Shown piece after piece: positions 9,676 to 48,602 of a stretch of DNA of 64,000 nucleotides. The stretch is from the NCBI GenBank assembly GCA_029953675.1, contig JAMWBK010000008.1, forward strand, positions 868,001-932,000. Direction: 5' to 3'. The notes under the pieces were generated by a model that made no database searches, was not told where the DNA came from, and saw only the letters and a list, made by a program, of their open reading frames with translations. Both the position numbers and the translations under genes were made by a program. Within the stretch, counting starts at the first letter, position 1. Every line of letters begins with the position of its first letter. The DNA is from Rhodosorus marinus CCMP1338. Lineage: Eukaryota > Plantae > Rhodophyta.

Positions 9676-10992
9676 TCCGTCTCCAAAGTCCTCCTACCAC
9701 CCGACGCTACTCAAAACCCCAACCCACGGCCAATGACGCACATCCCCTCGCTTGTCAAGCATCAGCTAAGATATACCTTCCCAACAAAACGCACCTTTGA
9801 AAAAGGTCCACTAAAACATTGCGGACGAAGAACCAACACAGCAGTCAAGTCTACCGCTTCAACCCCACTCGCCCGCCACGTCAGGAGAAATAGCACGAAG
9901 AAACCACCAACCCCCCACCGGCCCCCACCGTTCCCACTCTTAAGCTACTAATAATAGGCACCCCCGAAACCTACGTTGCTCTCAACCATCAACCAAAACA
10001 CCACAAAAAAACAAAAAAAGGGAGGCCGCACACATGCAATAGCCGCTCCTGATTCACAAAGTCGCCCACTCCTTCCTTCCCCTCAAAGCACAACGGACAG
10101 CCAAAACAAAAAAAAACAGAAACACCAACTAAAAACAAAACCACCAAACTACCCTAACCTTAAGCCAACACGTCCCAATCCTCAACACGCATCAGGCCAA
10201 GTCTTGAATACTCCCTATACATATATAAAAGGTCAAGAGAGAAAGTCATGTTTTAAAAAAGCAATCAAACCTGTTCAACTTTTCTTCCCCCATCTCTTCT
10301 CCCAACCCCCCCCCCCAAACCCGCACCCCCGACCCACCTCCTTCCTCCCTCTCCGTCCTCAACCCCAGCAACCCCCGAAAAAAATCCCAATTATGGAAAG
10401 ACCTAACCCATTCCAACAACAAATTTTAAAAAAATCCCCAGCGCTCTTCCTCAAACAAAAAACCAATTTAATCCGATTCTCAAAAAATCTGGTTTAAATA
10501 TATGAAAAAAGTGAAGGTCACGCGCCCCCCTTCTCTTTCCATCTCCTGACAGTTAAGAGAATCTAAAATTGCATTTAAAATTTTCCGTTACTACGTATAA
10601 ATTGCTCTATTCTTGTCCCGAGTATTTTGTATCTTCGTTTAAGGGGTAGGGTACACTCTCTTATTTGGTTATTGAGGATGTGTGAACGTTGTTTTTATTA
10701 TAAAAAGAGTGAGGTTTGGTGACATCCTCGGTACCCTGCTTCCTACCCAGCCGTAAGGGAGGGGAGGAGTGAGGATTTAAAATATTTTGGAAAATATTTA
10801 GATCATGATAATGTACGGAGGGACGTGCGGACTGGAGAAATATAAAAGAGAGCTGGTTTTGTATGTTAATATCTGTATTTTGAGGAATTGATGATTTAGC
10901 TACCCCTTGTAGAAAAGTGGAGGAATTGCCTCTGTAATCAAATCGTAGCCAATGGATTTATGTAAATTTTGAAACTGGGCGATGGCGAGGCT

Positions 10993-11047: not shown

Positions 11048-14000
11048 TGTTAGTATCGGGTTAGTTACGTATTGAGCAAGCCAGTTCGGATGTGTCGGGT
11101 TCGGATGTGTCGGTTAGGGGGAGGTTGTCGTTTCTGAACTGACTCTGATGGCTTCACAAGCCTCTGCATACCTTCAGACGATTTTTCAGCTTAATTCTCC
11201 TTGTTAAGAGTGCCACATTCTCAATATTGATTTGTTGAATTCCCCTGGCTAGGGACAAGCAGCAGTAGAGCATTTGAGGGATGCTCGCTATGCGGAAGTG
11301 TGCGTCCATGACGACACGCGAGGTTTGTTTCTGTTGCTTGCAACTCAGTTGACTGGATAAAGAGTAAAAAAAAGCGATGCCGTTCGGTAAATTGTGTTAC
11401 AGTGCTAGGGCCTGATTGCTGCCCCTGTAGACATCGACTATTGGGAAGCCGATTGTATGCTCGCGTACAGCTTAGTCGGCGAAGAGAAAAGACCATCTCC
11501 AGGTTGTGCTCCATTCGCCAACTCGATCCCCTACGTAGTTTCGCTTCGAGCAGGTGTTTGAGGCACACCCCAGCCAAGAGCTTGTCTTCCTGCGAGAAAG
11601 TAGATGAGGAAATGGCCTGTGCACAGTCTTCAAAACCCACAAGCGAGAATGCTTCCTCAAAAAGCTGGACACTATAGAAGGAAGTTCATCTAAATAAAGG
11701 CAAAATATGTCTAAAATAAAAGCCCAACAATTTTTTATAATTTCTCAAGTAGTGAAGTGAAGGATCCTTGCAATATACCATATATTTAGGCTGCCTGACG
11801 CAACCCGGGACGGTGTTTTTTCTTAGAAAAAATTTGAATTTCAAGTTTTCAGGGCCTTGATTAGGCCAAGAGACCCCTCAGCGGATTTGCATCACTTGGC
11901 CCAAACGCAGTCAATTGGTGTCAGCCGTTCTGTGGAAGAAACCACTGGTCTCCTTGCTCAATAGTGGTCAGTGCAAAAACACAATTGAAAGGAGGGGGAC
12001 GGGGAGCGTTCGTGTTGCTGCACTAGAACAGGAGTCCGACAACGCCGAATTGCTCTCTGTCCGCGACATTGTCCACTGAGCGAGATGCGTTCGATGTCTG
12101 GGGTTACGACCATGTCGCTCGGTCTATGAAGATGATGAGAAGAAAGCTTCCACGTCCTCCCTGATCAGGCAGAGAAGTTCGAATAGAGCGTCTCATCTCT
12201 AGCATTAAGTGCGGCATCTACTAAGCCACCAGCATTGACGAATCTGAAAAGTCTACGGGGAACCTCGCTTTGAGTACTAAAAGCATCGAATAATGGGACA
12301 GGTTCCGCTGAACACGGCATCTATACTCGGCCACTGACCACAAACCAATCCACGACCACTCTTCTCATCAAGGCCGACGTCTAGTCCTAGTGACTCAAGT
12401 CCCAGCCCACACTAAGTTCCGCCGCGCAGAAAAGCTCAGGGTTCCGCTTTTTTCTCAACATCCTTCCCAAACGACGAGGATTCCGGCTCCATCCATTCAC
12501 AATCATGCAAATGCATCGGATCCGCAGATTTTCTACACCCAACACCAAAAACACCAAAAAACCAAGCGGAACTTGCCAGCTTTGGTCCATCCAACATCTC
12601 TCGCGGGGAAATCTCTCCCTAAAAACAAAAATTTTCCGAATCGGCCATTCTATTACTTACCAATCCATTCCACAAAACCCTAGTAACACAACTACCATTC
12701 CCAACTACTCACGAACCCCCCCCCTCCCAACCCTCCCTTCCCGCAGGGAATATCGCCAAAAGGGGGGGTGTGTTCACGCATCAATCCAGCTGACACTTAA
12801 AAAAGAGAAACCCATCCATAACAGAAAGGCGCCTACCCAAACAAAACCTCAAAATTTCAAACATAAGCTCGGTTAGTCAAACCATTCATTAAACCTACAA
12901 TTACAAACAATATCCTCGTTTCTGTTGACGAAGACAAAAATCATAAATCAAAAAGGCCCACGGTGTCTCACGATTGATCAACTTGCATCTTTGAAATATG
13001 GGTATAATAGAAATAAAAAAGGCTATAGTACGTTTTCATTGGCTTAATACTTTTTCTTACCTGGTCGATCTTTGCTGTGAGTGGATCGTTGCACACAAAG
13101 GGGGGTATCGCTCAAGCAAGTTTCTCCCAATAGGGGTCCTTACTTGTGGTTTCGGGGCAATCCTACCACTTCATGAAGGACCAAATTTCCCAACCCCCAA
13201 AAGCTACATGAAAATCCAAGGTGTGAGATTCCGCGCCTGATTCATGAAGGCACACCGAATCCTTAACCCATATTTTATCACCTCACGCAGTACCCCTTTC
13301 CTAATATCATATCGATTTTAGACAAAACTTTACTAGGGGTTAATAGAATATTACTATTCATTTAGGGGTTATCATACTGCACCCATCCTGAGAGTGAACA
13401 TGGTTACGGGGGGTAAAACAAACAGTTAAAACGTAGAATAGCCTTATTTACTTTTGTAATAAATATATAATGCACTATCTTTCATGGGGTAAAAATAGCA
13501 TGCAATTTCTTTTCATTCTTAAGACGGGTATAGAAGTATTTTATGATTAGTCTGTGTTTTAAGGGGTGGAATCAAGGACAGTTATGGAATGTTCGAAGAA
13601 GAAAAGGGGGATATTTGTTTTTGTTTGTTTTGTTTGTGCTTGGGCTTGTTTGAAAAAGTGAGGGCTATCTAGTGGAAAGGCTGTTTTGGGGGTCTTTTGG
13701 CGCTGAAGGGGTTGAGGGACGTGATAATATAATTCCTTCGGGGTATCCAAGAGGCGAAGGGGGGTGGCGCGGTAATTTGAGTGGCAAGCTAGAAGAATAA
13801 GGGGGGGGTGGGTGTTGGGGTTTTGCTGGGTAACGAGATTGGCCTTTGAGGAAGGAAAGGGGGGGTAAGGTTGCACGGGGTTATTGGAATCTTGTTGGTG
13901 AAGAAGTTCGTTGAAGACATTTGGGTAGTAAAAATTTTGTGTGTATTTGTGTTGTGGTCGAAGCTGCGCATTTCGTGGTTTGTGCGTTTTGACTTTGGAA

Positions 14001-14114: not shown

Positions 14115-15437
14115 ATGGAGGGTGCAGGGAATCCTCAAGGAGGAGCCTACTATGGCAATGCCCATCATGGACAGGACATGAACTTCAGAGGTTTCTACGA
14201 GCAAGGCTCTGGCGGAGCGATGCAGCACGGAGATGTTGCCCATGATAGTTATGGTGGACAGTCTGGGGTAAGATGTTCGACTACTGCTGAATCCTGTGTT
14301 CCGTTCTGGTCGGTGATTCTCACCCAGGTTTTGTCTTGACTGTCTATAGATGGATGTTGGCAGCTATGGCCATGATGAACAGAGAGCAGCCGACAACATG
14401 GAAAAAGCCCGAGCAGCTGCCCTGAAGACGCTGCCGGCCATGCTCGCGAAATACGTTCGTGCACAGAACAAGCCGGTGACCGAAGAGGAACTCACAGAAG
14501 AAGTCCAGAAGGTGTATAAGGACCTGCGAAAGCCTGATGGAACCAAGTACACAGGAAACTTGGAAAGAGCTGTTAGAGGAAGTCTCTGCTCTACTGGCAT
14601 GTTCGAAAAGCTCGAAGACGGAACGTGGACATTGAAAGAGGACCAGATCCAGATCTACGAGCAGCGCCTCGTTGCAAGAGCTGCTAAAATAGAAGAGGAG
14701 AAATCGAAGAAGCGAAAAGCTAGAGATGAAGCAGGCATGGAAGAAGGTGCGAAGCTTGACACTCTCCTCCATCTTGAGGTGATGTCTCAATGAGTGTTTT
14801 GTTTCGCGAACTATTTTGTGCAGGTGGCGAGAGATCAAGGAGATACTCTCGTAAATCGTCAACTCCAGGGATCAGGTCGAAGAGGCAACACAAGAAGGAG
14901 GCTATTATCGAGATGGTTTGCTCATTCCAGGAGAACTTGCGTACTCAGCCGAACTGGTCTGCGTGCTTTCAAAATCCCTTCAAATCCTTTAGAGGTGATG
15001 AGAAGGAAGACGACGTATGGAAGAAGCTGGGCAACGAGCGGTTTGTGTTCATGCTGCAAATCTACACCTTCCTCAACGAGCTGATTGTAAACCGCCACAT
15101 TGTCGCTGAGGCGTTGGCTCGGGAAAAGGCGCTGGCTAAGGCTGAAAAGCAAGGCAAGAAGTAGGTTCTCGTTTACTCCTGTGGGTGTTTCGGTCAAAGG
15201 GTTTGATGAGGTTTGACTGACTTATCGATTTCTGTCTCCTGCAGGCGTCCCCAACCAGCTGAAGAGAAAGCCTCTAAGGCAAAGAACCAAGCACCTACTA
15301 TTAGCCCTCAGCAGCTCACCTCAGTGTCGAAGGCTGTTAGAGGTATTCAGGACAACATTTTGAAGCTCAACGGTAGGCTAACTACAATTGAGGATGTTTT
15401 AGGCGCTGGTGGCGGACAATGGCAAGGAAACCAGTAG
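14115..15437 (+). CDS. Putative winged-helix (HARE-HTH-like) DNA-binding protein, paralog A; join(14115..14267,14350..14746,14824..15160,15245..15437)
   Basis: Three GT-AG introns restore one continuous frame. The protein is highly similar to the minus-strand paralog at 18781-20025. Order: G/Q/H/Y-rich N-terminus, wHTH-like core, basic stretch, conserved helical domain, C-terminal heptad repeat. Confidence 0.85.
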
Positions 15438-16223
15438 CCGTCCTCTCATACTCAGATTTGCAGCGCATGAAATACGCGCGGGAAATTTACAACCCTTCGC
15501 TATCGTAAAATAATCTTTGAACCGCTGAAGCGCTTTAGCACTACAACACCCCCTGCCGAGTCCGACCACGCTTGTCCCAACCGCACACGGATGCTTTTAG
15601 CGGTTTTGACATTTGTCCATGCACAGGAACAGAAAGGTAGGGACGCTGGCTTGGTCATTGAAGAATGCAGTGGGTATCCAGTTCCCCTTTAGAGAAGCTC
15701 AGGCACCATCAACTTTTTACTTTCCAAAAATCTTTCAAACGAACGACCCAATGTGGCTACCAACCTTCCGGGTCGATGTCTCCATCATTGAGGGATCCAG
15801 CAGCTATCCAGATCCTTTCTTCTCCCCAACCACCTGCGTTTCGTTCTTTCAAAGCTTCTGTACGCTGCGCGCGCTTTTCGTTCCAAAACTTTTCCGACGA
15901 GTACGCTCGCCTTCCCATCTTTCAACTGGGGCCATCGCTTTGCTCTTTACTGACAGGAATGTACGTTGGGGTTGATGCCAAGCTGCTGGTCCAGACATAC
16001 TCTGGGCGGGCATCGGACTGCGCCCATGAGATTTGTAAGGGCTTCCTCGTTACATGGGATTTTCCAATTCGTAGTTTAGGGCATCGAGTCTCCTGGGGAA
16101 TTAAAGAGTCCTCAGAATCCCCGACGCCGTCGTTAAAGTGGTTTGCTAGAGAGTGTTGAATCGAGTGCTGTTGGATCATGGCTTTACAAAGATGCATGGG
16201 AGGAGCGCCGTGAATAGTGACCG

Positions 16224-18175
16224 ATGGAAGGCCCCGTGTCGTCTGAAAACTCCGACGAACAAGGTGATCCCTTTGATGCGTGGCTTGAGGATGTCTGCAC
16301 GGTGCAGGAAAGGTTCTCTGAGTTCTTTGTTAGGGCTCGGAGATATGTTGTTGTTTTGGATATCTTTGAACGAGAAGAGCGGAATGGTCGAAGACTTAAC
16401 GTGATCATTAGAGGCTCCCATAACTATCCGGAGGTGGCCCCTGTTGTATCAAGTCCGTCGAAACGTTTGGGAGAGGAGCTGAGGGCCCTCAGCGAAACTC
16501 TAGCCCCGAAACGGTCCCTATTTGAGCTGGTTGCCATCGCTGTAGACATCGTCAGCCTGGACTATGTCCTTGAAAAAGGACGAACTGATCCTGTTCAGGA
16601 AACTGAACAGGAGGGGGGAGTCTCCGTACAACAGCTTCCACGGGAAGTTATCTTCCGCATAGCGTCGATGCTAAACTACGACCAAGTCAGAAAGCTGGGA
16701 AGCAGCTGTTCCTTCCTCGCGAGAACGCTTCTGGGATGGAAATCAGATTCAAATCAAGCTTGGGCAAAACTAGCTAGGGACAGGTTCCCACGTTTGATGG
16801 AGACTTCCGCGTACAAACCTCGAGGGCCAGAGTCATCCTCCGCTTCTACGGGGAAAGGTGAAATGCTGTGGAGAGCAATCTACCGTGCTCAGGAACGTAG
16901 CTCGGAGCTCTGGTTCTACGAAACTCAGCCGAGAAATGTGGTCGTCCAACCTTCAGCAGTTGATCAACCCGTGAGCTGGATTCGCCGTCTTCCAAACGAG
17001 CGATCGTTCCTTATCGCCAGCTCGGATTCGTTGGGCGTCTTAGATAAACAGAGACCTAGTAGTACTAGCACCAGCTGGAAAGCGGTACCTGCTGAGCCCA
17101 GCGGAAGTGGTTGTGGTACAACCAACGTTGACGTGTCTCCTCTATCTCGACCAGACGGTATGGTAGCAGCGACGGTGTCCCCGGCTTCTAGAAAGGTCAA
17201 GCTTTGGAGAAGATCGCTGGAGCCGTCAAGGCTGAGATGTATGAGGACGAGGACGTTTCAAGAGCCAGTGGAAAAGGTCCATGTAAGCTGTTCTCGTTCT
17301 GGCCGGAAAAGCATTCAGCACTGCGTCGTTCTGACAGGTTAAGCGTCGCTGTTTCGTCTTTCGTTTTCTGCCTCTAGCTTGAGGAGACGTATGCTGCGAT
17401 AGGGTGTCGTGATGGTTCAATTGTAGTTGCTTCACTATGCGTTCTTCAGCGGAACATTACGTTTAAGAGAACGCATCGGGGCGAAATCACCTCACTCAAC
17501 TCTCTGTGGGAATCTAGCAAGCTGTTCTCAACGTCCACGGACAGCAAGGCTCATGTTTTCGATTTGGAGCGGGGCCGTGAGTTTCTCAAGTTCAGCTGTC
17601 ATGATCCCATTACCTGTGCGGCTGTGACCAAGGACGAGCAGCTTGCCTACGTCGCTTCTGGATGTGCGGTGTACGTGTGCGATTTTAGGCAGAGAGAAAC
17701 GGCTGCCGTGCTTGGAAGCTCCTTAAGCAACGACCTAATCCAATGCATGACACTTCGTGACGATCTGCTTCTGGTTTGCGGGACGGAATCTGGGTCAGTT
17801 ATCGCCTGGCCTGGAAACGGCCCATGGGAAGGAGTCGTTCTGGCCCGCGGCTCCTGTCATAGTCCCAATGACCGTGCCTGGAATGTTGGTCTCAAGGACA
17901 TACATGTAGACAACTCGAGGATCGTTGGGTGTAGTCCCGGAACTGTGAGGGTTTGGGATGCGTCGCTCACCATTCAAGATTACTCGCACGTAATTTACGA
18001 AGCAGGCCCACAGAAGAGTCTGACTTCAATGTACGTCGACGGTACAGAGCAGCAAGCCCTCTTCGGGCTTAGCGACGGGTCCATTGAACATAGAAGCTTT
18101 CTTGATGGAAGGCTTAGCGAGGATGAGAACATGCTCCATGTCCTAAACCATCCATGTGTACAGACCAACTCTTAA
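16224..18175 (+). CDS. RWD-like / F-box / WD40 protein; join(16224..17337,17403..18175)
   Basis: F-box motif VQQLPREVIFRIASMLNYDQVRKLGSSCSFL. N-terminal YPEVAP motif typical of RWD domains. WD-like units (LTGCRDGSIVV, FSTSTDSKAHVFD, CGTESGSVIAW, GTVRVWD). Intron GTTAAG(17338)...GATAG(17402). Confidence 0.75.
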
Positions 18176-18780
18176 AACTACGGGCTCCGCGAGACCCCTA
18201 GTGAGTGTTCCCATACTATCCCGCCAGAACCAAAGATATCTACTGAGCCTGAGACGGGACGCAGTAAAAAAAAAGTACGGGAAACTAACTTGGAGATTCT
18301 CATACTGATCAAGTGGTAATTTGAGGTGTTGTTTGTAGAGAATCGAAAGACCCAGAGCCCGGTATCAGTTGAGAGGGCTTCGCGAATAGCACGCTGAAAT
18401 ATAGATTTGGTCTTTTCGTAGCATCAAGCAGGCAACCCCAATGTTTACTCTTCACTATTCGACCGTGCCCCACAACTGAGACTGGCATTCCTTTAGCTGT
18501 GAAAAATTCTGAGGCACATGGCGATCGAGTTCCTCGAAGAAGGTTTGTGCCCCCCAACCACTGTCCTTAACCTACTGTTTGGCATATGATCGAAACCAAC
18601 CGAAACAACAGAAGTTCTGCGCATTTATCGTAGGTAAATATGTCGATTACAAGAGCTTGGGAGCAAGTTCTACAAATAATCAAGAGCAAGCTCCACAAAC
18701 AACGACGAAAAAAAACCGCGATGAGTACAACACATCGCAGTCATTGACAGCATATATTTCTGAGAACGGGACCCGGTCCT

Positions 18781-20025
18781 TCATTCTCGGTTTCCACTCC
18801 ACACTTGCTGTCCTCCCACCATGCCTTCTACGGTCCCCAGTCGACCAGTCACTTTGACAATCATCTCGTCCAGGCTGCTTAGAGTGGTAGTCAAACTGTT
18901 TAACTGTTCGGGAACGGTTTGCTCAGTTCTTGCTTTGTCACCGCTAGCGTTCCTGCAATTTGCGAACCAAAGCATGTAACGTGAGTTTTGAGTATTGAGA
19001 GTCTGTGCCTAAGTGTCCTTCTCTATGCGTACTTGGCATTCTCCTTATTTTTCTGCTTCTCTTTTGCGAGCTGCTCTTGGATAAGATGTCTATGCTGAAT
19101 CACATCCGTCAAGTAGTACCACATCTGAAGCATGAACACAAACTTATCGTTGCCTAACTTCTTCCATACATCGTCCGCCTGCTCGTTACCCTTGAAGCTT
19201 TTGAACGGATTCGAATAGCACGAGGACCAGCTTGGATCCTTTCGCAGATTCTCTGAAAAGGTTCTCAGCATCTCCAGGATCGCCTCTCTCTTCTCACTTC
19301 TCTTCATACGCGCTGAAAGGTTCTTGCGAACATACTTGCGCTTTCTGCGTTCAGTTCCATCTCCTGCAATATACGAAACGAAGAAAACTAAGCAATCCAG
19401 CTATCGCGTATTTGGCAAATTTCCTCGGTGCACCTTCTACTTCTTCCGTCTTTGCGCTCTCAGCTCTCCTGCGCCTCTTGTTGTTCTTTTCTGCCTCTTG
19501 CTTGGCTGCTCTTGCTGCAAGTCGCTCTTCATAGGCTTGTGTCTGTTCCTCGCGCAAGGTCCAGGTGCCGTCTTCAAGTTTCTCAAACATTCCAGTTGAA
19601 CACAGACTGCCGCGTACTGCGCGCTCCAGGTTTCCAGTGTAGCGGGTGCCGTCCGGTTTTCTCAGCTCTCCGTAGACTTTCCCAACTTCTGCACAGAGCT
19701 CCTCCTCATTGACTGGCTTTGCTTGAGTTCTCATATGACCAGCAAGAACAGCGGGAAGCGTGCGTGGAGTGTTCACGCCACCACTCTTGCTGATCTGACG
19801 ATCCACCCCCTGGGTATTGACGCCATCCATCCCGCTGTAAGAGACGCCAACGTCCTGCATGGAACCTTGATGGTAGCCATCATGCGAAAGGTTCGGATCT
19901 CCGGTGTTCATGGTGCCATTCGGATTCTCCAGTAAAGCCGTCAGAGAATGAATATCCGCACCTCCCGCATTGGTATACGCCCCATAGGCGGAGTTCTGAA
20001 TCGGCGCTGAACCAGATCCGTCCAT
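18781..20025 (-). CDS. Putative winged-helix (HARE-HTH-like) DNA-binding protein, paralog B; complement(join(18781..18952,19033..19363,19434..20025))
   Basis: Shares a 29-aa identical core, the NPFKSF.G.E..DDVWKKLGN motif, and two intron positions and phases with paralog A. Confidence 0.85.
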
Positions 20026-22895
20026 TCTTCCAACCAGTACCTACAAACCAGCATGCCAGTCATTGTCAGATTCCGTCCCCGAAACTCGATAAACTCCCAG
20101 TCACAGTCGGCTTTTAAACAAACAAAGCGCCCACTCTTCCTCCCACACTCAAAGAAGAACAAAAAACAGAACACACACATAAAAGACCGCGCGCACAACC
20201 AGTCCAGGAATCAATCCCACTGGCAGGCCGTATTCCAACTCTAAACATTCATCGCTTCCAACCGCGAAAACCACACCAAAAAAAATAGATATATATATAT
20301 ATTTCCATCCTTATCTCGGGATTCAGGTCCCTAGCCATTCATCTAACCTCTCCTCCCCCTAAAACCCCCAAAAACAAGAAAACAGAGCCCCCCGTCTCCG
20401 CAACAGCCAGTTGAGAAAAATAATCCAAGCTTACCTTCTAAAAAACGTATAGTTTTTAAACAAAATTTTATGTTCAGTTCGCGACCTTGGAAACAAACCC
20501 CCTTTGTCCCTTTTTTTTTCTGCGCCTGTTCTTTTCTTTCTCCTTCGTCAGACTTTTTGCCTTTTTAAAACAAAGCCCTTCGAAACCCGCCCCCCCTCGC
20601 AACCCGCCCCCGCCAAGGCAAAAAATACAATCCTTCAAAACCTACCCCCTTTACATAAACATTTACCCCAACAGCCCGCCACCCCACCCCACCTCCCTTC
20701 CCCCCTTCCCCCCTCTCAATCCCCACGCAATTATATATTTCCACCTACCCACCTTTTACAAAGAACCGAGAAACCGAAACCCGAATGGGATGAAAAAAAA
20801 AATCGACTTCAAGGCTACGTCTGCGGACTCCTGTGCAACCCCCTTTTTTACCTTTTTTCCGAACGGTTTCTCAGGAGGGCTCTCAAAACCCAAACCAAAA
20901 AAAAAAAAAAAAAAGTTTTGATTCTGACCCGCGTGCTGGGGTTTCGTTTCCGTTGTTTTTTCCCCCCTCTTTCGATTTCCAAAAAAAACATCTTGCAAGA
21001 AAATATCACCCCCTAAGCTAAGACCCTTTGATGTTCACCCAGGTAGGTTGTCATGTCACTAGAATATATCCAAATGGTCTCATTTTCAAAGGTTTTGACA
21101 ACCACTACCGTGAGTGCTGGATTTATGAAAGCGTTTTCAACCTTCCCTCCCCCCCCCCTTAAACAATGCATCAAATTTCTTTTTTTGGCGGGTGGGAATT
21201 TCTCGCACCTCTTTGGAGATTTGAAGTTCCCCCCTGTGCTCTATTACAGTAGATATGCAAGGGCCTATGGAATGGAGAAATGTATTTGTTGTTTAACGAC
21301 TCACAAAATGGGAGCAGCCCCTAGAATATTCGATCCTATTTTGAAATAGGTTTATTTACAAAGTCTTTTGAAAAAAACTAATCCCGACTGGGATCGCTCA
21401 CCAGGGGTGCTCAACAATTTTTCAGGTCAACGGTTTTTACTCTAAGGGGGGTAGATCCAAGCTGTACGAAGATTTACCGCCCAGCGCTTCAATGGGTCGC
21501 ATCTATTTACAGGGGTGATAATGGTTTGTTTTTTCGTAGATCCTTTTCTGCCCAGGTCGAGAAGAGCTGGGGGGAAGAGCTTGAACAGATTGCAAACTTC
21601 TTTGATCTTTACAAATAAATACATCATTTTTCCTGCTCAGAGTATCCTCAGGCTACCCCTGTGGGCTTCAAATCCGTCCACGGAACGCGTAGAGGGATAT
21701 TTTGCAGGGGGGGAAGAGGTATATGCGAAGAACATGCGCTCATTTCAACATCAAGAATTCTAGACCAAGAAACAAAGCTGTTCATTGCTTTTTACCGGGG
21801 TCTTTAATATTGTTTAAAAATTAATGCTCGTCCGTATCAGTTTAAACCAATTATATCCAAATAGTTCCCCATACTAACCAATCCAGTAATAGATTTTCCT
21901 GGAAGGCCTCAGTTTCTTGAATAATAAAATGATTAGATATATTGAAATACTTTTAATTATGGGGTTTATCTTTCATTCTATATGTGTATTGGGCACAACA
22001 TGAAATCTATGGCCACTAAGCCAACCAATAGCCCAATCTACATAAATGTCTCCGCTAATTGCTACGCCTCCTTGATATTTTGCACTTGAAAAAGGATAAT
22101 TATTTTATTTGCCCATGCAAAAAATGTCCTCTGTCCTGCACTGACCCATTGAAAAAAGTTCGTCTAGATGTGAATTTGATAGTAGATCGTATTTTACTCG
22201 AAAACAAGATTTGGGCTGGGTTGGTTCTGACCGTGGCGGAGCTTGGTAGTCAGAGGCAGTCCTACAGACCAGCACACAGACTGCTATGGTCTAGAGCTTT
22301 GACAGCAGGCACTTAGAAAGGTTGGATGCATTTTTCCCATTCTCCATCGGTGTGGCAGATATCCCGTTTCTCTCCAGCTTCCTCTTCAAGCTGATCGTGA
22401 CTGGATCTATGGCGACTAATGTGAGGCAGCCGATCATCCTTCAAATGGATCCCATCACGGAAAGTAGTATCAGGCAGAGCCCAAATCTTTCCAGGACGCA
22501 AAACCTCTAGTGTGATCACTGCTCGTGGTGCTGCGCAAAGTAGAAAAAGAATTTGAAGCAACGACAGATTTCGAGATCTCCTCTGGGCTCTGTCATTCGC
22601 CTTTCAAGATCGCGTTTGTCGCTGAGGAATGGTTCCTTTCCAACTCAGCTGCGCGCTGTTGACTTCGGATTGCCAGACGGATATCGACGAAGTATTTGTT
22701 TTGGTTTATGTACTGGTAGCTGCCTTGATTCCGGACCAACAAGCCCCGGCAAAATGGTGCCAATCGTGCCGGTTGAGCTAACAAAAATGTTTCATCGACA
22801 ATAGTCCAACCAGACCTGGTTCCCTAGGACCCCAAACTCGCTGATTGACGTGTGGTCTTCTGAGAAAGAACCCCTATGTTCCTCGGGTTTCCAGA

Positions 22896-30257: not shown

Positions 30258-32118
<1,861 letters not shown>

Positions 32119-33434
32119 CCTTACAAACCTTTACACAAAATCGCCCCACCCTAACCAAACAAAAAAGTTCTCAACCACAACTTCCACCCCCCCCCCCACA
32201 CGCGCGTACAAATCCAACAACCTCCCAGAAACCCGCCTTTGCTTCGGATATCAGACGCTTATCCTCGTAACCTATCCCTCTAAGCTCATCACAAACCGCC
32301 CTTAAAACCCGTCCGCAATAATCCCTCACACCATAACACCTTTCATACCCCGTATTCCCATACAACTGCCCCAACAGTCAAATCTGATTAAATAGAGACA
32401 GCGCTCTGTACCATCCTCAACAGAACAATCCCAACGTCAAATGTTGTGATCCGATAACACCAAGAATTATATTTTAGTTAAAAATTTAAGGGCCCGATCC
32501 CAGTTGATCCTTATCTAGACTTAATTGATTCTATATATCCAGATGTAGACTATATATTGATATTAACTAGAAAAAACAGGATTATTCTTCTACATGTACT
32601 TTAATTATGTACTGGGGTTTGTTGACAAGACAGTTTTAGGAAGTGGAGGGGTCGGGTCGGACAGGAGGCCTCTAAGACGGCTTTATACTTCGCTAGGAAA
32701 GAGTATCTCTGTCTGATCACCTCGCAGATATTACTAGGAATGTGCAGATCCATGACAACAGAAAACATGACAGCGACGAAGAACTTTTTTTCTCTTGACG
32801 AGGGTCGTCTGGATATGTGTGGAAATAGATACTGGCGTCCCCCCGAGCGGATGCGGTGTCGCTTCCCACTCCTAGGCAGGGCGTACCAGCAAATTATACT
32901 ACCTAAATCGTTTTAGTTGGTACCCAACACAACCGTGGACAGTCTTCTCAACCCACGCGTGCGACAAAGGATCAATCTGTAGACCTGATTACCGGAAAAC
33001 GCTCTGAATGTCGTACCATACTCTCGAGAAAGCCTTCAAAGTGCCAAACCGATGGTCTACCAACTCATCAAGGCATGAACTGACATTAACAAAGAAAGCA
33101 TATCTTAGATTATGCAATCATAGTACAAAGTATATATTTTATATGAAATATTATTCTATATTTAGATATATTTGTTTCTATTTTATGAATGTTGTTGGTT
33201 TCGAGGACTTGTTCAACCCATGGGGTTCATCTGTTTTGACGAGGATGAGATGGGGATGAACTAGTTCAGCTCGGATTGGTTGTGGATGTAGGTTTCTGCT
33301 TCTTTGGAGTATTTCGTAGGTTGTTTGGTTAGGACGAACAGGAAGCAAAAGGGTTGATTTTGAAGGGCAAAACGTGTAGCTTGGGTGGTCCACGGTTTCC
33401 TGTTGTTAGTGTGTCCTTTTTGTTTGGTTGAGCG

Positions 33435-46178: not shown

Positions 46179-47901
46179 ATCGTTTACGACCAGCTATTTT
46201 AGTCGACTAGCACCTCTACGATGATTCTATTGCTGTGGCTGACGCCACATGAGCCGGTATTTCCAGTGAAAGAACTTTTACAGTTAGTGCAGCGTAACCT
46301 CTCTAACGACAGTGTTTCTTATACCATGATCATCATCGTCAAGATGATGCAGACAAGGCTTGCAAGCTTTGCTCATACAGGACATGAGAAGCTAGATGGA
46401 GACTTGTCCGCTAAACCTGGCCTTCCTTCCCTCATCTCCCCTCACGGAGAGTGAATCCGCGGTTGCCTTGATTCAAAACTAAACATGTTCAACGATGGAA
46501 TAAGTTCAGGCTCACAGATTATTTTGGTTCGGTCATGAGCAGAATACAAGCTTGCGTGAACAAGTCCATTATACCGCACTATGCTTGTGTGGTTGTTCAT
46601 TCCTGTGGATTGCAGAGCTTCTGCAGTTCATGAATATGCTTGTCAACAACAGCTTGACGGTCGAACTGATTCGCGCTTACGACAGACAATCAATATCGAG
46701 TTTATTTTGATTGAATCTAGTCAATAAATACGGTTTTCACATTTCAACATAATTTGAGCTTGATCGTTCCTGAATTAAGGTCTCCACATCGGGTATGTTT
46801 GGGCAGCTGCGTACATATTACGCATATTTCTGAGTTCTGTTTTTGTTCATAATATGTACAGCCTCATCCTATTTCATTATTTAACTAGAAACAAACCTAG
46901 TATATCAAAATTTGAGGACATGGCTCCAAATGGATTCCTTACGTTTCCAATAGTTGAAAAACAAACCAATCATTAAGGATGCGTTTCCAGTCAAAAATAT
47001 TGACTCCCTTCTTCCCACGGCCGTGTTTTGCCAAACCAGGCCGATCAGACCACTCAGAACCGGGGGGGGTACAGAGATCCCAGCGGCACTTAACTCATTT
47101 AAAAAAAAACTGAATGAAAGGCTTCTTGGGAAAAGAGAAACGCTCGGGGGTTGGGGGGGGGGTTGGGTAAGAGGGAAATATGTATTCCGAATACATTGTT
47201 TTTTGCTGATTTCTGATTGATGCATTCATCCAATCGGGTGGATATTTTGTTGAATATTGAATTATGGAAATAAGAGATAGGGTGCCTGTTTTGCCTGAGG
47301 TCAGTGGACATTGGAAAATCTCCAAGAAAATATTCCGATTTTGATCTCGAGGATCTCAAGCTGATGGGGAACGCTGTTTTCGTCTATGTAAAAATAGATT
47401 TACCCCTTATCATTCCCTTTTCAAATCTTCACCTGTCGAGCACGAAGAGCATTGGAGGGGTAGTAATAAGAATTGAAAGTTTGATATCGAGAAAACTTGA
47501 TTTGCTGGATAGGACCGTTTTTGTCCGTAAAATGAGAAATGGAGGTGTTATCTTCATGGATTGTAGGGGTGGAGTATTTTTTTGTTGTCATGGCTGGGAT
47601 CTATGGCGTGTATGAAGGGGGGTTGTTGAGGGGGGAACTTTCCCCTGTGGGGTAATGATGGTGTATTCAGAGGGGTTTGTTTATTGAGCTGCCGACCCGG
47701 CTGCTGTGTGAGTTGTTTTTTTTCATTGCTTTTAGTTCTTGGGGTGTGAAAGAGCTTCTGCTTACTGGGTTTGGGTTTATAGAGCGCTGGGGGGAGGGGA
47801 GGGTTGGTCTGTGAGGGGAGCGGCAGTTTTGGGAGTTTTGGATCTTTTTGTTTTGGGTTTGTTCTGTTGGGTGGCGTTTATCGTTGTTAACTTGAGGAGT
47901 A

Positions 47902-48602
47902 ATGGCTTTTGTTGGAATCGCTGGCTTCAAGTCGACGCGGGCAGGTAAGCCTGCGACGAGATCGCGACCGGTCGTCAAGGATCAAATCCGGGATGCTCTG
48001 CAGAACATGGATTCGGTAGGTTTTTGTTTTTTTTGGGTTGTGCGGTTAGAACTGTGCTGCTGGAGAGGGATAGGGAAAGTCTCTGATTATAGTGGGGTGA
48101 CTCTACCGGAGCTGACCGTGTTCTGTGCTCTTTTTTGTTTGCCTTGCGACAGCCCGAGGCCTCAGCATGGAGGGATTTCCAGGCTTCAGTCGAGGCTGAG
48201 CGAAAGGAAATGCTTGAGAACAATAGGAATTCTATCCTCGTCCGCCAGCAGATCTGGAATGATGGTGTATCTGAGAAGGAGCTCCTCACTTTCGCCGGAC
48301 AGCTGAAGAACGTATATGCCAAGAAGCATGGCATGAAGGGGTACGATGTATTCACTCCTACCGGTGGGGTTGCCACCGACTTGCCGGGAGTTGGCGCCAC
48401 CGGTGTTGGTGCTATGGACTTCTATACGGAGAACACGGCAACCTTGGTTGGGTTGAAGAGCCTTGTCCCAAGCCTGCCGAAGGAGGAGGCGGCGGCGCCC
48501 GTGGCTGCCACACCCGCGAGCGAGCTTGAGCAACCCTCATTCGAGGTTGTGGATGACGAGGAGGAGGAGGTGGAAGAGATGGACGCTTTGCCTTATGCAT
48601 AG
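47902..48602 (+). CDS. Hypothetical plastid-targeted protein; join(47902..48015,48153..48602)
   Basis: MAFVG transit-peptide start, phase-0 GT-AG intron, acidic C-terminal tail. No domain recognised. Confidence 0.75.

Follow-up and report, generated by a model that had tools for sequence, protein, structure and literature searches.

A convergent pair of paralogous genes in the red alga Rhodosorus marinus encodes members of a new protist protein family with a predicted winged-helix domain

Here we describe two related nuclear genes, A and B, of the red alga Rhodosorus marinus (assembly GCA_029953675.1, contig JAMWBK010000008.1), which lie on either side of a third gene within a stretch of 64,000 nucleotides, called the window below. 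Splice models for the three genes were built directly from the window sequence, and their positions in the window are as follows.

14115-15437, + strand: gene A, 359 amino acids; 4 exons (14115-14267, 14350-14746, 14824-15160 and 15245-15437), an open coding sequence in the splice model; intron phases 0, 1 and 2
16224-18175, + strand: the enclosed gene, 618 amino acids; exons 16224-17282 and 17378-18175
20025-18781, - strand: gene B, 364 amino acids; 3 exons in the splice model (20025-19434, 19363-19033 and 18952-18781); intron phases 1 and 2

Every intron in these models has GT...AG borders, and the NCBI annotation, made independently on this contig, lists proteins of 359, 618 and 364 amino acids, which correspond to A, the enclosed gene and B; the product of gene B is identical to NCBI protein NDN08_006139 (P0004). 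P0001, a protein derived from a transcript of a second R. marinus strain, has 97% identity with A from end to end. It follows from the agreement in length with NCBI and from so close a transcript-derived match that the gene models are sound and that the genes are expressed. A and B are convergent, with 3343 nucleotides between their stop codons, which confirms the arrangement (two genes, tail to tail, about 3.3 kb apart) described in an earlier interpretation made from the letters of the window, here called the sequence-only reading. A tblastn search with A recovered B at E=5e-48 and found no third copy in the window.

The two proteins have a layout that is fixed in the wider family to which they belong: the N-terminus is disordered and leads into a winged helix, after which come a long helix with a basic linker resembling a nuclear localisation signal (NLS), a novel second domain (domain 2) and a coiled coil. 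The parts listed below were delimited with hidden Markov models (HMMs) of the family, alignment and structural models, the confidence of which is given as the predicted local distance difference test (pLDDT).

14115-14421, + strand: A, residues 1-75, N-terminal low-complexity region, predicted disordered (pLDDT <50 for residues 1-62), rich in G, Q, H and Y
14422-14646, + strand: A, residues 76-150, winged-helix domain (family HMM E=2e-35; domain model), which holds a 29-residue core shared with B
14647-14882, + strand: A, residues 151-203, long helix after the wing and basic NLS-like linker, spanning the phase-1 intron 14747-14823
14883-15089, + strand: A, residues 204-272, domain 2, helical, conserved in about 60 representatives
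15315-15401, + strand: A, residues 320-348, C-terminal coiled coil (heptad a/d positions; helix 317-349 in the model)
19543-19767, - strand: B, residues 87-161, winged-helix domain (family HMM E=1.7e-33), core as in A
19305-19542, - strand: B, residues 162-217, helix after the wing and basic linker (from alignment with A), spanning the phase-1 intron 19364-19433
19095-19304, - strand: B, residues 218-287, domain 2 (domain-2 HMM E=4.7e-32)
18817-18903, - strand: B, residues 325-353, C-terminal coiled coil (heptad a/d positions)

The N-terminal 60-75 residues of A and B are of low complexity and predicted to be disordered. A model of full-length A (mean pLDDT 59.5) places a helix at residues 148-180, after the wing, and proved too disordered for a fold search (best Foldseek E 0.15). 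The linker of A carries two NLS-like clusters, KKRKAR and RSRRYSRK...KRQHKK, and a net charge of +7; across the family a positive net charge of this segment was counted in 59 of 60 members (98%), with a median of +6. Domain 2 bears the motif NPFK..G.E....W.KLG.E+F..LQ.Y.F and found no match in searches of Pfam or of PDB sequences. Towards the C-terminus, 9 (A) and 10 (B) hydrophobic heptad a/d positions follow one another, that is, 4-5 heptads; database matches to this part were weak and confined to coiled-coil proteins, and searches of PDB sequences with profiles of the full-length protein, the winged helix and domain 2 returned coiled-coil or spurious matches only. The sequence-only reading had named most of these parts. 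Its low-complexity N-terminus and basic stretch were seen again, and its second conserved domain and C-terminal heptad repeat are real and kept across the family, as judged by the HMMs and the a/d positions; the terminal motif G..W.GN that it also listed is present in part, but is only partly kept even among Rhodosorus sequences.

Residues 76-150 of A, the winged-helix domain, modelled alone with AlphaFold from a 30-sequence alignment, gave a pLDDT of 91.6 and a predicted template modelling score of 0.81. The model contains helices at its residues 10-21, 27-40 and 53-63 and strands at 67-69 and 75-77; helix H1 is followed by a short strand and H2 and then, after a loop of 12 residues, by H3 and the beta-hairpin of the wing. 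This is the topology of a winged helix and bears out the earlier proposal that the core folds in this way. A three-helix winged helix-turn-helix (HTH) with a C-terminal beta-hairpin is common to all winged-helix families. When the domain model was compared with the PDB by Foldseek, forkhead domains came first (FOXN1, FOXP3, FOXN3, FOXO1 and FOXM1; template modelling score, TM, 0.6-0.7; probability 0.99-1.0), and the top forkhead matches were DNA-bound structures (FOXN1 5ocn/6el8, FOXP3, FOXN3 and FOXO1; E 0.05-0.1). The N-terminal domains of the delta subunit of RNA polymerase (RNAP delta; 7f75_L, 6zca_D, 2krc, 8x6g_E and 9a6y_A) followed with probabilities of 0.92-0.97 and E 0.13-0.28, and at 24-25% had more sequence identity than any other entry. 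Winged helices of MarR, Zur, Rok, cullin WHB and RPA32 were scattered through the same list. We also considered a viral origin and rejected it, as a fold search of BFVD returned generic phage winged-helix proteins only.

How far the family extends became apparent only with an exhaustive profile search. A word-indexed search gave just eight relatives, and two more of this kind, run with alignments A2 and A4, brought in hardly any others, their candidates being dominated by low-complexity words; the profile search of 1.84 billion representatives retrieved 167 at E<=1e-3, 73 of them at E<=1e-10. With HMMs for both domains, a winged helix followed by domain 2 was found in 60 proteins, and the remainder are mostly fragments. 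The red-algal members come from Rhodosorus, Rhodella, Timspurckia and Galdieria phlegrea, and further members from Rhodelphis limneticus, a sister of the red algae, from the stramenopiles Platysulcus, Cantina and Blastocystis (KAK8811568, 'hypothetical protein') and from the apicomplexan Digyalum oweni. Eight other relatives have two to four copies of the winged helix in tandem and lack domain 2, their sources including Luapelamoeba (Amoebozoa) and Diphylleia (CRuMs); these are P0072, P0159 (Luapelamoeba hula), P0090 (Diphylleia rotans), P0106, P0094, P0113, P0135 and P0142. One further sequence, P0008, lies on a 4.4-kb Logan contig and was called as a protein of 409 amino acids, of which the first ~120 residues are a winged helix 61% identical to that of A; the rest is probably read-through into non-coding or intron sequence, in a mis-predicted gene of another intron-bearing alga. 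None of the relatives has a functional name, all being 'hypothetical' or 'uncharacterized', and the sole link to Pfam is a sub-threshold one to a domain that is itself uncharacterised (see below); the family is thus as uncharacterised as the sequence-only reading had supposed. What is new here is a protein family that spans several protist supergroups, the fold class itself being well known.

A and B are old copies under strong purifying selection. They share an identical core of 29 amino acids, YTGNLERAVRGSLCSTGMFEKLEDGTWTL, in which exactly 19 of the 29 codons differ between the genes, every difference being synonymous, just as the sequence-only reading had counted. By the Nei-Gojobori method (NG86), synonymous divergence (dS) between A and B is saturated overall; nonsynonymous divergence (dN) amounts to 0.20 for the winged-helix region and to 0.34 for domain 2, where dS is 2.4. 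It is the saturated dS together with the low dN that marks the copies as old and constrained, and the earlier claim of strong purifying selection holds for the winged helix in particular.

The two genes share two introns of matching phase, as the sequence-only reading had described. One shared pair, A intron 3 with B intron 2, is in phase 2, splits a Lys codon and falls in the same column of the default alignment. The other, A intron 2 with B intron 1, is in phase 1 within the Gly codon after EEG/VEG, its two members being offset by 3 alignment columns in the indel-rich linker. To these is added a phase-0 intron (14268-14349), in the disordered N-terminal region of A, which B lacks. Homologs at three further loci (L001 and L083/L084) are intronless; given these intronless homologs and the extra intron in A, introns have been gained or lost within the family.

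A neighbour-joining tree of the family from 295 conserved columns groups A with its orthologs P0001 and P0002 and B with its ortholog P0003; the A and B clades are sisters inside the red-algal group, with P0005/P0009, Rhodella and P0007 as their nearest outgroups. The tree thus places the duplication before two strains or species of Rhodosorus diverged, yet within the Rhodosorus lineage. The exact node is uncertain because the A-B distance (0.45) is similar to that between A and P0005. 'Ancient paralogs', the term used in the sequence-only reading, is apt in that the copies are old and their dS saturated; the duplication itself, however, appears to have taken place within the Rhodosorus lineage, and it is the family that is much older and wider. 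The simplest account of the pair is a local inverted duplication, the third gene being either already present between the copies or a later arrival.

The family to which the winged helix is closest was sought with Pfam models and profile comparisons, A and B being compared with Pfam at E<=1 and 30 family members at E<=10. HARE-HTH (PF05066; gathering score 25.9 bits) matched neither A nor B nor any of the 30 members, while the positive controls ASXL1-3 and Bacillus subtilis RpoE matched it with 66-84 bits (1e-18 to 1e-24). Forkhead (PF00250; 27 bits) matched 0 of the 30 members, and no linker histone match (PF00538) was found in A, B or the family members. The sole Pfam model touched by members was DUF7648 (PF24659; 27 bits), for which no function is on record and no mention was found in the papers searched: 20 of the 30 gave sub-threshold matches, with E down to 6e-6. 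A and B scored 20.8 and 23.0 bits against its 27-bit cut-off, over model positions 1-41 of 63; the aligned part comprises H1, H2 and a conserved LRKxDGxKY loop, and helix 3 and the wing (positions 42-63) are unaligned. Two of the multi-winged-helix proteins, P0072 from Luapelamoeba (34.5 bits) and P0106 (28.2 bits), pass the DUF7648 cut-off, and the red-algal family is therefore linked to a wider, uncharacterised set of multi-winged-helix proteins.

Profile-profile comparison by hhalign allowed weaker likenesses to be ranked. As to the profiles, the entered B. subtilis RpoE sequence is that of the PDB chains and seeded 80 genomic loci, 18 of which are in the alignment; six entered FOX domains recover 46 forkhead sequences from the PDB at E<=1e-10; and the entered ASXL1-3, RpoE and H1/H5 sequences each find the Pfam family to which they belong, with E from 1e-18 to 1e-29. 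The hhalign probabilities and scores were as follows.

Family against forkhead: 76.6%, score 29.8, the 64 aligned columns reaching from H1 as far as the wing (shuffles 9.9+-1.8, maximum 17.9)
Family against RpoE (18 N-terminal domains): 42.8%, score 24.4 (maximum of 200 shuffles 21.4)
Family against H1/H5 globular domains: 9.3%, score 18.4 (shuffle maximum 18.8)
Family against ASXL: 1.4%, score 13.8 (shuffle maximum 16.6)
Control, forkhead against H1: 10.8%, score 20.8
Control, RpoE against ASXL: 0.9%, score 14.1
Control, forkhead against RpoE: 0.2%, score 10.6

The forkhead comparison corresponds to P=2e-5 and a z of about 11 against 200 column shuffles, and is below usual acceptance. The panel lacks the power to establish or rule out membership of forkhead or of HARE-HTH, because RpoE and ASXL, which are both HARE-HTH, were not joined by it (the alignments are small). 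It nonetheless shows a similarity of the family above background both to forkhead and, somewhat less, to RNAP delta among the HARE-HTH proteins. As a measure of how weak the signals between winged-helix families are, the globular domains of H5 and H1.0 gave sub-threshold Pfam matches to Forkhead (E=6e-5 and 4e-4).

We therefore file the pair as a separate winged-helix family, distantly DUF7648-like, and as a member of neither HARE-HTH nor Forkhead. The sequence-only reading had assigned the core to HARE-HTH. The residue spacing on which it drew is real, but the assignment was not upheld: PF05066 matched none of the 30 members while its controls matched, ASXL lies at background, forkhead is slightly ahead in both fold and profile, and the Foldseek comparison that had been proposed as a check put forkhead in the lead and RNAP delta behind it at E 0.13-0.28. 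It is possible, rather than probable, that the pair represents an ancient and unrecognised family of forkhead-like proteins that bind DNA through a winged helix and occur in red algae, Rhodelphis and SAR (stramenopiles, alveolates and Rhizaria), with multi-winged-helix cousins in Amoebozoa and CRuMs.

As to function, we lean towards the view that A and B are oligomeric, nuclear, nucleic-acid-binding regulators of a new winged-helix family, either transcription factors or chromatin-associated proteins. In this view, helix 3 of the winged helix and the conserved LRKxDGxKY loop would make the contact with DNA, while further, non-specific affinity and import into the nucleus would come from the basic linker; dimers or higher oligomers, possibly mixed between A and B, would form through the coiled coil, and domain 2 would recruit partners. 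The analysis itself establishes the gene structures, the paralogy, the purifying selection, the prediction of a winged-helix fold, the layout kept across the family and the lack of a named relative, from which DNA binding, nuclear location, oligomer state and regulatory role are inferred. Among the 60 proteins, basic residues are conserved at R111 (96%), K112 (95%) and R124 of helix 3 (90%).

Several observations weigh against this view. The winged helix is only mildly basic, with a median net charge of +2 (0 in gene A), unlike that of forkhead proteins, and this is the main caution against regarding it as a forkhead-style, high-affinity reader of sequence; moreover, the base-contacting N..RH of forkhead reads R..RG in the family. 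Winged helices that contact proteins, those of cullin WHB and RPA32, are among the Foldseek matches, and no PDB match fell below E=0.01, so that the fold class is secure and the winged-helix family is not. The model of domain 2 is of low confidence (pLDDT 52-66), the mixture of L, I and V at the heptad a/d positions does not fix the number of subunits in an oligomer, and the family members are known solely as sequences and predicted models.

Three other explanations have to be set beside it. The first is a linker-histone-like architectural protein, whose winged helix and basic tail would attach to DNA or nucleosomes irrespective of sequence and whose coiled coil would link fibres to one another. 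Small proteins with disordered N-termini, a consistently basic segment after the winged helix, and a structural neighbourhood of forkhead and H1 would all fit, but the hhalign score for H1/H5 is inside the shuffle range, the Linker_histone model of Pfam has no match and no H1/H5 chain is among the top 50 Foldseek matches; the basic segment is also short (about 50 amino acids) and gives way to a conserved folded domain, which differs from H1 tails. We find this explanation doubtful.

The second, which we consider unlikely, is a HARE-HTH-type reader, a divergent winged helix that would recognise modified DNA (for example N6-methyladenine or derivatives of 5-methylcytosine) or associate with RNA polymerase or chromatin enzymes, and would not be a factor specific for a DNA sequence. 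Its best support comes from RNAP delta, which gave the fold matches of highest identity (24-25%, at probabilities of 0.92-0.97) and, as RpoE, an hhalign score above all 200 shuffles (42.8%, score 24.4); the near-neutral charge of the domain is also closer to that of HARE-HTH than to that of forkhead. Set against this are the 0 of 30 members matched by PF05066 at E<=10, where the controls reach 66-84 bits, the background-level score of ASXL (1.4%, score 13.8) and the lead of forkhead in both Foldseek and hhalign. In addition, the usual partner domains of HARE-HTH (endonuclease, methylase, DEUBAD and PHD) are absent from the protein.

The third explanation may involve the enclosed gene. This encodes a weak F-box-like motif, LPREVIFRIASML (Pfam E=0.55), and a WD40-type beta-propeller recognised by several Pfam models with E down to 2e-11, all of these matches being below the curated cut-offs; no Pfam match was found in its first ~130 residues. 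The sequence-only reading had raised the possibility that the pair and this F-box gene form a regulatory module, for which adjacency is the sole evidence. The homologous loci L001 (on a 61-kb contig), L083 and L084 lend the idea no support: each has a single copy, the neighbours are unrelated (PTH2 and SNARE genes; mitochondrial carrier and aldo-keto reductase genes), and neither a second copy nor an F-box/WD40 neighbour is present at any of the three. A protein-interaction scaffold, whose winged helix and domain 2 would have proteins as their ligands in place of nucleic acid, for instance as ubiquitin-ligase adaptors acting with the product of the enclosed gene, could draw on the position of that gene between the paralogs, on the cullin WHB and RPA32 fold matches and on a winged helix that is not strongly basic, but it is improbable in view of the absence of both neighbour and second copy at L001, L083 and L084, the weak F-box match, and the conserved basic residues on helix 3 and the loop, which together with the NLS-like clusters fit nucleic-acid binding better.

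Some further features surround the pair. Beyond gene B on the same contig, on its upstream side (L082 540-7130), lie a kinesin gene and an ATP-citrate-lyase-type gene (Ligase_CoA and Citrate_synt), which are unrelated to it. Strand-skewed GT/CA tracts with runs of at least 6 G or C occur at 13600-13900 and 20280-20720, mirrored upstream of A and B, and similar skewed tracts with G/C runs at 9700-10400, 32000-32300 and 47500-48100. We considered the two upstream tracts as a promoter relic shared from the duplication and rejected this, as the same tracts occur at other intergenic sites of the window; they look like a general feature of the intergenic or promoter DNA of this genome. A short (TA)n microsatellite lies at 20288-20303, upstream of gene B.

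Among known systems, forkhead has the best structural (TM 0.6-0.7) and profile (76.6%) likeness to the family of any that we compared. From H3 to the wing the family pattern, +..h+G.L.S.G.F.K...G.W.h, resembles NSIRHNLS.N.CF.KV...GKG.YW.L of the FOX proteins. In helix 3, for which forkhead has the signature W.N.[IV]RH.LS with Asn, Arg and His contacting bases, the FOX sequence WQNSIRHSL stands against LERAVRGSL in the family, so that Asn is replaced by Arg124, His by Gly128 and Trp by Leu, while the Arg, Ser and Leu are kept; the loop between H2 and H3 is 5 residues longer in the family and has an invariant DG..Y motif of its own. Forkhead factors have been described from opisthokonts and Amoebozoa, whereas the present family occurs in red algae and SAR. 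If the distant link to forkhead is true, the family bears on the origin of forkhead-type DNA readers; if it is indeed forkhead-like, it would be a 'missing' relative of forkhead and H1 outside the opisthokonts, and a new class of transcription factor with its own partner-binding domain.

HARE-HTH, as found in ASXL, HB1 and RNAP delta, belongs to the same fold class, and the likeness of delta to the family is above that of shuffles; the family proteins differ in having no associated chromatin-enzyme or nuclease domains. With DUF7648 the family has H1, H2 and the LRKxDGxKY loop in common (positions 1-41), while its domain 2 and coiled coil are not part of DUF7648. The design logic of the family, with a winged-helix DNA reader, helical oligomerisation and a partner-binding region, is that of E2F/DP, HSF and RFX, but no sequence or Pfam relationship to these was detected and domain 2 has no counterpart in them.

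Red algae have small regulator repertoires. A survey of red-algal transcription factors was built on PlantTFDB categories (PMC12567131), and such surveys would be blind to the present family because plant transcription-factor databases, with the categories of PlantTFDB, would not include one. The family would be a candidate class of regulators for many poorly understood protists, including Blastocystis of the human gut, and the retained, inverted tandem pair A/B offers a natural system in which to study subfunctionalisation or the formation of heteromers.

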